From: Blastocystis sp. Blastoise
Lineage: Eukaryota; Protista; Bigyra: Opalinata
NCBI GenBank assembly: GCA_039096225.1
Contig: JBBPEB010000007.1
Coordinates: forward strand, 806,001 to 870,000
Direction: 5' to 3'
DNA length: 64,000 nucleotides
The position numbers and the translations under genes were made by a program. The notes below the pieces were generated by a model, which saw nothing but the letters and a program-made list of their open reading frames with translations, was not told the DNA's origin and made no database searches. This document shows, piece after piece, positions 53,313 to 55,778 of the stretch. The number at the start of each line of letters is the position of its first letter. Within the stretch, counting starts at the first letter, position 1.

Positions 53313-55778
53313 TTATAATTGGCAATGGTCATTAGTACAGAAAGAAACAGCATCAGGGAACATTTCTTCTTCACGTTCTTCAGTAGCATCTGAATGATTA
53401 TTTGTAAATAATTTCTTATTATATACAGGAGGAAGAGAAGTTTTTTTAATTAATTTTGATTTAATTAAGAAATTTGAATTACCTGTCATTCTTTTAGGAG
53501 AAGAAGGTGTATCTACTTTAGTTCTATCTACAAATTGTATTTGATGTATGTTCTTAATACTTTCATTATAAACATCTTCACTAATTTCTTCATAAGGTAA
53601 TTGAGGATAACATAATTTTTCAAATTTAGGTAACATACTAACACCTTTTAATTGATATTGGAAGAATTGAAGCATATGTGCTATATGAGGACCTTCAGTT
53701 TTCTTATCAAATGTAATTGTACAACTAACTTGATTATCAGCCCAATATCGTTGCATAAAAGCAGCTAATGATAATTGTTCAAACATAGAAACTTCATTAA
53801 TAGTACGAATACCTTCTTCTTCAATCTTGACAGGTATTTCAATAACACTAGTAGTATCTTCCATACCTACTGCATCTTCTACTTTATAACCAGCTTCTAT
53901 AATAGGTTTTAATAATGGAGAAGTTTTATTTATACGAACTCTACGAACATATGTTTTACTCTCAGGGAAATGCATACCAGGAGTAGCACCAGCTAAGAGA
54001 GATACTGTTCCAGAAGGTTTAACAGAAGTAGTTTTAATAGATTTAGGTATACAGAACCATTCACTATATACATCATCCCAATGTTGAATAGTATTATATC
54101 CATCATTTAACCAGACTTTTAATTCATCTAAACTATGTTTAGCTAAGAATTGAGCTACACCAGAAACAGAACAACCTATTCTACGATTTCTTAACATAAC
54201 TCTATTAGTTTCAGGCCAATGAGTCATACGTAATGTAACTGTCTTTGCATATAAATAAGCAAATTTCAAAGTACGTAAATATTCTTGTAAAGAATTATGT
54301 CTAGCAGGGAATGTTTCGACTAAACAACATAATTCATAAGATTCTAAAGATTGTTCTAAACATGGATTTCCACCTTTAACTCTATAATCAACATTATTAG
54401 GAGGATCACACATTCTACCATATTGTTGCATATTACTTAACCAAGCTAACCCTGGTTCACCATTAATTTGAATACGTTCAGCTATTTCTTTATAATCCAT
54501 ACCTATCTTAGCAAACATACTATTATTAGAAGACCAACCAAAAGCCATACGTCTTGGATTCTTTTCATAATTCTTTAAATCTAAAAATTCTTTATCTTCT
54601 GGTTCACCAAAAGCAATTTCAGCAGTTCTACGAATATTACCAGAAACAACACATTTACCAATTAAATTAAATATATCGACAAGATCTGTAGAAGTCATAC
54701 AAGTACCAATACGACCTGTTAATATTTCAGAAATAGCATCATGTAATTCAACTAAAGGTTTAGGACCACTAGAATAACCACCAAATGTCTTTAAAGGAAG
54801 ACCTTCAGGACGAATAAGACTATAATCAAATTTAATAGGAGGTAATTGATTATGATTCTTATCACCTACAAAAGATTCAATTAAAATCTTTACAGATTCA
54901 ACCCATCCTTCACGACTATCTTCTATACTTAATACTAAAGGTTCTTCTTTATTAGGACCAAGAACAAGTACAGTACCTGCTCCTTTAGTATCAAAACCAA
55001 CACCTACTCCTAACATAGAAGCATCCATTAAAAATGTAAAAGGACGAGTAGGATCATTCACCATATCTTCAGTAGACACAAAAGCACAATTATTTAAAGC
55101 AGCAGATAAATTCTTCTTATGAACAATAGCTGATCCCATACACCATAAACCACGACCTATAATAAAAATATAATATAAAATAATATAATTAATAGAATAT
55201 ATATTTAATATAATATATAATAAATATATAATAAATAGAATATATGATAAACATAATATATTATAAATATAATATATAATAAATAAATAAAACAAATAAA
55301 TACCAGGAGGTAAGAATTTCATATTGAACATTAAATTGTACATTTCTTGAGCTGATTTTTGAGCTTGATCTTCATTCCAACCAAGTTGTAAGCTTTCAAT
55401 GTGTTCTTTTTGAAGAGAATATGTACCATCAACAACTCTTTGAATAGTCTGCCACCAATCTTCATCAGTTCCATCAGGTCGTCTTCTAGAATAAGTTCTT
55501 CTATAAACTATTTCTCCAAGACCATTAAAACCAAATGAAGGGTTAATATGCTTATATTTTTCAACAAAAGAATCATCTAAATGAAAACAAAGTTCACAAT
55601 CCATTTTTGTACTTCGAGCAAAGCACCTATATTTTAAAAAACATAATCAATAATAAATAATTAGAAACTTCTTTTAGTTTTATTATGTACATATTATAAT
55701 AATAGTATCTAACTTATTATCTAATATATACCTAACTAAATTTAATTTGGATCGAATAAAGAAAAATGATTTAAACAT
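53313..55778 (-). CDS. nrdJ: Adenosylcobalamin-dependent class II ribonucleotide reductase (monomeric RTPR/NrdJ type) with a predicted N-terminal presequence; introns 55627-55731 and 55157-55303
   Basis: YRRTYSR, FLPPGRGLW (after removing the intron), LNNCAF, EDSREGW, GNIRRTAEI, NGEPG, radical-Cys motif GGNPCLEQSLESYELCCLVE, TTSVKPSGTVSLL, WADNQVSCT, C-terminal CTNDHC redox pair. Confidence 0.95.

Follow-up and report, generated by a model that had tools for sequence, protein, structure and literature searches.

Evidence for an unannotated first exon encoding a putative organelle presequence in a B12-dependent ribonucleotide reductase of Blastocystis

The dNTP supply of mitochondria, and of their anaerobic derivatives, is usually explained by import or salvage. 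A gene in a 64,000-nucleotide stretch of Blastocystis DNA (hereafter the window) raises the question of whether a resident reductase may also serve, as an initial annotation had proposed that a hidden exon gives a B12-dependent class II ribonucleotide reductase (RNR) a mitochondrial-type presequence, with possible dual targeting. The gene, at 53313-55778 on the minus strand, is one of three NrdJ/RTPR paralogues in the genome, and its open reading frame (ORF; 53313-55604, minus strand) corresponds, except for one read-through intron, to KAK8810621.1 of Blastocystis sp. ‘Blastoise’, an isolate from the tortoise gut (PMC10690189). The presumption that the DNA came from an anaerobe with a mitochondrion-related organelle agrees with this source. 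The study of the tortoise isolates gives a GC content of 21-23%, notes long introns and used RNA-seq to guide its annotation (PMC10690189), and GC is ~21% over the window. Purine-rich low-complexity DNA at positions 1-3000, with AGAT and GA-rich arrays and a GC skew of 0.7-0.9, fits the abundant low-complexity regions reported for such isolates. The synteny with phenylalanyl-tRNA synthetase, which adjoins type-A NrdJ in other Blastocystis, is not visible at this locus, and the ORFs neighboring NrdJ here have no Pfam match.

On sequence grounds the enzyme is a monomeric, adenosylcobalamin (AdoCbl)-dependent ribonucleoside-triphosphate reductase (NrdJ/RTPR, class II) of predicted activity, as had been claimed. 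The ORF carries PF17975 (RNR_Alpha), PF21995 (class II insertion domain) and PF02867 (barrel) in that order, scores 359 bits against the TIGR02505 equivalog model (cut-off 340.05) and matches PDB 1L1L with an E-value of 1.5e-97. Kept in the alignment to 1L1L are the N-P-C-x-E loop, the Cys of the L-N-N-C motif and the Cys after the loop, which we take to be the catalytic positions and redox-active cysteines of class II RNR. The Lactobacillus leichmannii enzyme (1L1L; TIGR02505) shares with the Blastocystis NrdJ its monomeric class II type, domain order and loop; however, it is bacterial, cytoplasmic and devoid of an N-terminal extension, whereas the present gene is eukaryotic, nuclear and interrupted by two introns, and its product has a putative 23-residue presequence. 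Closer in this respect are the NrdJ proteins of Euglena gracilis and Dictyostelium discoideum, likewise eukaryotic class II RNRs of bacterial origin, for which an organelle presequence goes unmentioned (PMC3605638). Class I RNR seems to be absent from Blastocystis, as it is from Euglena (PMC3605638), and a search of the whole genome with the class I large-subunit barrel family gave no match. On the strength of this large-subunit search, the genome may have no reductases other than its three class II paralogues.

Upstream of the annotated start, an ATG, a 47-nt exon, a GT-AG intron and 22 further in-frame nucleotides are all present at the claimed coordinates (Table 1), the exon-1 ATG occupying 55778-55776 and the ATG of the annotated Met lying at 55604 (minus strand). 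Splicing of intron 1 joins the 47 nt and the 22 nt in frame to the annotated Met and adds 23 residues with exactly the claimed properties (six basic residues, no acidic residue and an R-C-F-A motif, the Arg codon of which straddles the splice junction), while the unspliced reading, if the intron is retained, runs into in-frame stops. The program-made ORF of 763 aa shortens to 714 aa, the annotated length, once intron 2 is removed, and the full joined model comprises 737 residues; other Blastocystis carry an intron of 30-35 nt at the position of intron 2. In all eight homology-supported introns read in this genome the intron begins with GTA and ends with TAG, and intron 1 conforms.

Table 1. 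Features of the NrdJ gene and of its upstream region, in positions of the window.
Feature	Position	Strand	Remarks
Exon 1, predicted coding, unannotated, 47 nt from ATG	55732..55778	-	Residues 1-15 and two bases of codon 16
Intron 1, 105 nt, GTATAT...ATATAG, 13% GC	55627..55731	-	Boundaries match intron 2 and the Cpn60 start-codon intron
22 nt upstream of annotated start	55605..55626	-	Final 7 residues of putative presequence, with the third base of the Arg codon at the splice junction
Rest of exon 2, from annotated Met (Met24)	55304..55604	-	RNR_Alpha; N-terminus aligns with bacterial homologs
Intron 2, 147 nt, at the P-P-G/R-G-L-W junction	55157..55303	-	In frame, stop-free, read through by the ORF
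Exon 3 to stop codon	53313..55156	-	Insertion domain, barrel, N-P-C-x-E loop, C-terminal Cys pair
Promoter-like region	55801..55956	-	Blocks conserved in alignment with L053
CCAATCAAAT block	55952-55943	-	Conserved in L053
CCACCA block	55936-55931	-	Conserved in L053
TGACYGAC..GAACC block	55862-55848	-	Conserved in L053
GGCGCG element (GGCGCS across the alignment)	55806-55801	-	22-24 nt before exon-1 ATG; conserved in L053

The character of the added peptide can be judged against organelle proteins of the same genome, namely MCM, one of two MMAB copies, both succinyl-CoA synthetase subunits, IscU, NuoF, GCVH and Cpn60, which were located by family searches and whose N-termini were read against the domain starts. 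These reference presequences begin with M-F/L, are rich in Ser, Ala, Arg and Lys, are nearly without acidic residues and, in five of nine (Cpn60, GCVH, MCM, MMAB-C34 and NuoF), carry R-x-F-A/S directly before the mature part. The NrdJ extension, with its 23 residues, net charge of +6 and no acidic residue, bears the same processing-peptidase-type motif with Arg at -3 (R-x-F/Y-A/S) as R-C-F-A. Its maximum hydrophobic moment is 0.80 (0.77 in the ortholog described below), within the range of 0.48-0.84 of the known presequences, and is reached by none of 532 null peptides from the window, among which a net charge of at least +5 without acidic residues occurs in only 1.9%. The mitochondrial-type composition proposed for the peptide (basic and acid-free) fits the local presequence set, as does its amphipathic character.

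Several of the reference presequences are also interrupted by short AT-rich introns, inside them or adjoining the start codon. The GCVH first exon measures 11 nt, and its splice is confirmed by the deposited protein. In NuoF (G000:C22 near 316000, L042) an apparent 37-nt first coding exon is followed by a short intron within the presequence, so that a Met farther inside would pass for the initiator, and in mitochondrial-type Cpn60 (G000:C2 near 1038800, L035) a 39-nt intron (GTATATAT...TATAG) apparently separates the AT of the start codon from its G, so that an ORF scan would overlook the initiator Met. This Cpn60 intron equals NrdJ intron 1 in its first eight and last five bases. The GCVH, Cpn60 and NuoF genes resemble NrdJ in combining R-x-F-A with a short AT-rich GTA...TAG intron in the presequence or next to the start codon; they differ in encoding classical mitochondrial proteins and, for GCVH, in that the first exon is annotated while that of NrdJ is not. 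Separately, MCM (L011) and PFO (L029) show clear GTAAGT...YAG introns ending 4-8 nt before the ATG, and an acceptor-like TAG lies within about 25 nt of the start in most genes inspected, so the genome may be very rich in 5' UTR introns.

Relatives were sought with a query taken from a related contig, its first-exon ORF, by which many Blastocystis NrdJ first exons were returned from gut metagenomes; exact-protein look-ups with the three NrdJ paralogues of this genome found no contigs. One group, made up of P0264 and variants that hardly differ from it, shares 88% identity with the present gene's first annotated exon and lies on contigs (L053-L055) of 46% GC from pig and poultry fecal metagenomes. 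On these contigs, represented by L053 below, the sequence upstream of the conserved Met has the same in-frame build: a segment of exactly 47 nt that begins at an ATG, a GT-AG intron, and a segment of exactly 22 nt. The L053 intron (83 nt, 61% GC) has the same position and phase as the 105-nt intron 1 and no sequence similarity to it. The resulting peptide again has 23 residues, starts M-F-K as here, shares 8 identities, and has a net charge of +7 with no acidic residue; the Arg at its splice junction is followed by x-F, the motif R-L-F-T being a near match outside the strict R-x-F/Y-A/S form. When 1274 other pseudo-anchors from Blastocystis loci of normal GC were examined, an open 47/22 layout turned up at 8 of them, and at none together with a basic, acid-free peptide. 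As lengths and frame were conserved while the sequence diverged and the intron was replaced, the two segments are best read as a coding exon pair. The comparison of NrdJ N-termini from relatives, which the initial annotation had named as a check on its reading, thereby returned the identical split and a similarly basic, acid-free peptide. In sequence terms the exon-intron architecture is shown to be conserved in another species, this being the one further species in which the split is seen, and exon 1 is very probably real.

The alignment with L053 also brings out conserved blocks upstream of the ATG (Table 1), which place exon 1 just downstream of a promoter. Promoter-like motifs common to the three NrdJ paralogues (window 55801-56060, minus strand; L008 and L006) include an E2F-like TTGGYGGGAAA, CCAAT boxes and TTTTGGAGG, and some of these are kept in the GC-normal ortholog. 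These motifs hint at cell-cycle control of the paralogues.

The other NrdJ copies bear on the reading in two ways. The three loci of the genome lie on C29 (this gene), C15 and C16, and only the C29 copy appears to carry a presequence-type signal: upstream of the C15 paralogue a single GTA...TAG extension is possible, which contains acidic residues and is not presequence-like, its ortholog in another assembly (L061) permits no upstream extension, and the C16 paralogue has no presequence-like upstream extension. In the type-A NrdJ of strain DL, an apparent upstream GTAAGT...TAG was also considered and set aside, since it yields no open frame and no extension is possible. By contrast, a further form, type M (L051; first exons P0241-P0251 and P0277), has an intron-free, conserved extension of ~32 residues which starts M-L/F-R, is Arg-rich and contains R-x-F-S-T, an R-x-F-A/S-type motif being found in most copies. 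Type M has no Met at the mature start (the Met24 position), which makes the extension obligatory. KAK8817449.1 (strain DL, annotated), from the same RNA-seq-guided study, belongs to this type. Type M and the C29 NrdJ thus share a basic N-terminal presequence-like segment with R-x-F, and the distance from its Arg to the conserved Phe of the mature N-terminus is equal in type M, the C29 NrdJ and L053; they differ in that the type M extension is longer and unsplit, lacks the mature Met, belongs to the human-subtype clade and, in KAK8817449.1, is deposited as part of a hypothetical protein.

How these extensions are related is complicated by the history of the copies. In a tree of exon 2, the tortoise-type copies (the C29 gene, C15, L056 and P0008) form one supported clade and the human-subtype copies the other, with type M inside the latter. 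First-exon signatures, unlike the exon-2 tree, pair the C29 gene with P0264 and C15 with P0270. In the pig and poultry organism, moreover, the C29-type (L053/L056) and C15-type (L061) paralogues have identical intron read-through. The grouping of paralogues by lineage in the exon-2 tree, together with this shared read-through, suggests gene conversion between NrdJ paralogues, and such conversion would limit what the exon-2 tree can say on a single or separate origin of the presequences of type M and the C29 gene. A transcript of Cantina marsupialis, a free-living anaerobic stramenopile (P0055), encodes an NrdJ with a 50-residue acid-free N-terminal extension; as its sequence is not alike, it was set aside as support.

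Several other explanations of the upstream exon must be weighed. It is conceivable that an AT-rich upstream region holds an in-frame ATG, GT and AG by accident and that the transcript has no such exon. The bare pattern is indeed ordinary, as some open in-frame extension (an ATG with a GT-AG intron or a direct one) is permitted at about 61-65% of arbitrary ATGs, in the window as in Markov-random sequences, 15 models are mechanically possible upstream of this gene, and the exon is absent from the public annotation. However, the full property set is found in the 55778 model only, and its parts become rare in combination: judged by hand-made presequence criteria, a basic, acid-free extension peptide occurs at 5-6% of pseudo-anchors, at 0.1-0.2% with the R-x-F/Y-A/S motif in addition, and at about 0.1% when GTA...TAG sites are also required. 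The full combination is uncommon, but it does not decide the matter by itself, as the genome has some 8,000 genes and the initial reading had flagged in it 78 ‘presequence’ candidates, which makes for a large look-elsewhere effect. It is the 47/22 layout with basic composition, matched by none of the controls in GC-normal loci, that makes an accident very improbable. Alternatively, the peptide may route the enzyme to the secretory pathway or the nucleus and not to the mitochondrion-related organelle. Such routing could find support in a short hydrophobic run near the N-terminus, the matrix reading having been reached by hand-made criteria, but the run spans just 4-5 residues and the peptide is strongly amphipathic, rich in Arg and Lys, and has R-x-F-A as do Cpn60, GCVH and MCM of this genome; a destination of this kind is accordingly the least plausible of those considered, and we regard it as highly improbable.

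The remaining alternative accepts the intron and the upstream exon as real and conserved, but takes the peptide to reflect an in-frame upstream start of regulatory or other role, with the enzyme made mainly from Met24 and cytosolic. The GenBank model KAK8810621.1 begins at Met24 although it came from an RNA-seq-guided pipeline, and the same pipeline, which left out NrdJ exon 1, nonetheless caught the tiny GCVH first exon; coverage of the 5' exon may have been poor, preference may have been given to a model built on homology, or only a minority of transcripts may have the spliced form. The start contexts point the same way, as Met24 has the better one (A at -3, G at +4) and is kept in both species, whereas the exon-1 ATG has a weak context with C at -3 in both, and introns of the 5' UTR just before start codons, as in MCM and PFO, are common in the genome. 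Against a peptide of non-targeting role stand the conservation of its length, frame, charge and acid-free state despite divergence in nucleotide sequence and GC content, its resemblance to true organelle presequences of the same genome, and the type M NrdJ, which has no Met at this position and must carry its presequence. We consider this alternative unlikely. Initiation at Met24 could also coexist with import, since retention of intron 1 would force initiation there, and the initial annotation had envisaged an additional cytosolic isoform. Such dual targeting is doubtful, and it is less needed than had been assumed because two further NrdJ paralogues are without a presequence. What has stood from the initial annotation is the hidden exon and its mitochondrial-type character, to which the L053 layout, the local presequences and type M all contribute. 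Given that the exon is real, targeting of the C29 NrdJ to the organelle is likely on the strength of these comparisons.

An organellar NrdJ would need its cofactor at hand. Two cob(I)alamin adenosyltransferase genes were found, one (G000:C34:832137, L013) with a clear presequence and R-C-F-S, the other (G000:C13:321747, L012) starting at the conserved domain, which suggests that AdoCbl may be made in both organelle and cytosol. Since methylmalonyl-CoA mutase bears a presequence, as does one of the adenosyltransferase copies, AdoCbl would be available in the organelle; with the other copy lacking one, the cytosolic NrdJ paralogues could be served too. In a study of Blastocystis subtype 1, both adenosyltransferase copies are listed as mitochondrial, and the organelle tables contain no reductase.

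Taken together, these observations allow a model to be proposed for the C29 NrdJ. The 47-nt exon would be the true first coding exon, joined by removal of the 105-nt intron to the 22 nt now annotated as untranslated, and the resulting basic, amphipathic, acid-free peptide of 23 residues would act as a matrix-targeting presequence. The mitochondrion-related organelle would take up the longer protein and cleave it near R-x-F, whereupon the enzyme may provide the organelle genome with dNTPs by direct reduction of NTPs, using AdoCbl from the presequence-bearing adenosyltransferase that would also serve methylmalonyl-CoA mutase. Supply of the nucleus would fall to the two NrdJ paralogues that have no presequence. 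A cytosolic isoform could arise in addition if leaky scanning or a retained intron led to initiation at Met24, but the model does not require one. We place the probability of this explanation as a whole, a missed first exon together with an organelle presequence on an AdoCbl-dependent NrdJ paralogue, at about 0.6. A wider version, for which we see an even chance, would hold that organelle import of a B12-dependent NTP reductase, with dNTPs made in situ for the organelle's own genome, is a trait of the whole genus Blastocystis, the presequence being split in the tortoise-type clade and uninterrupted in human subtypes.

The joined reading would correct the public gene model, and it indicates that annotation of this AT-rich genome still overlooks short presequence exons. 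The literature searched describes no organelle-targeted RNR, in Blastocystis or elsewhere; if the model is right, the C29 NrdJ would be, as far as that literature shows, the first RNR of any eukaryote to bear a canonical organelle presequence, and a resident reductase would represent a different solution to organelle dNTP supply. It would further explain why Blastocystis has several NrdJ paralogues and two adenosyltransferases, and would tie the replication of its organelle DNA to vitamin B12 from gut bacteria.
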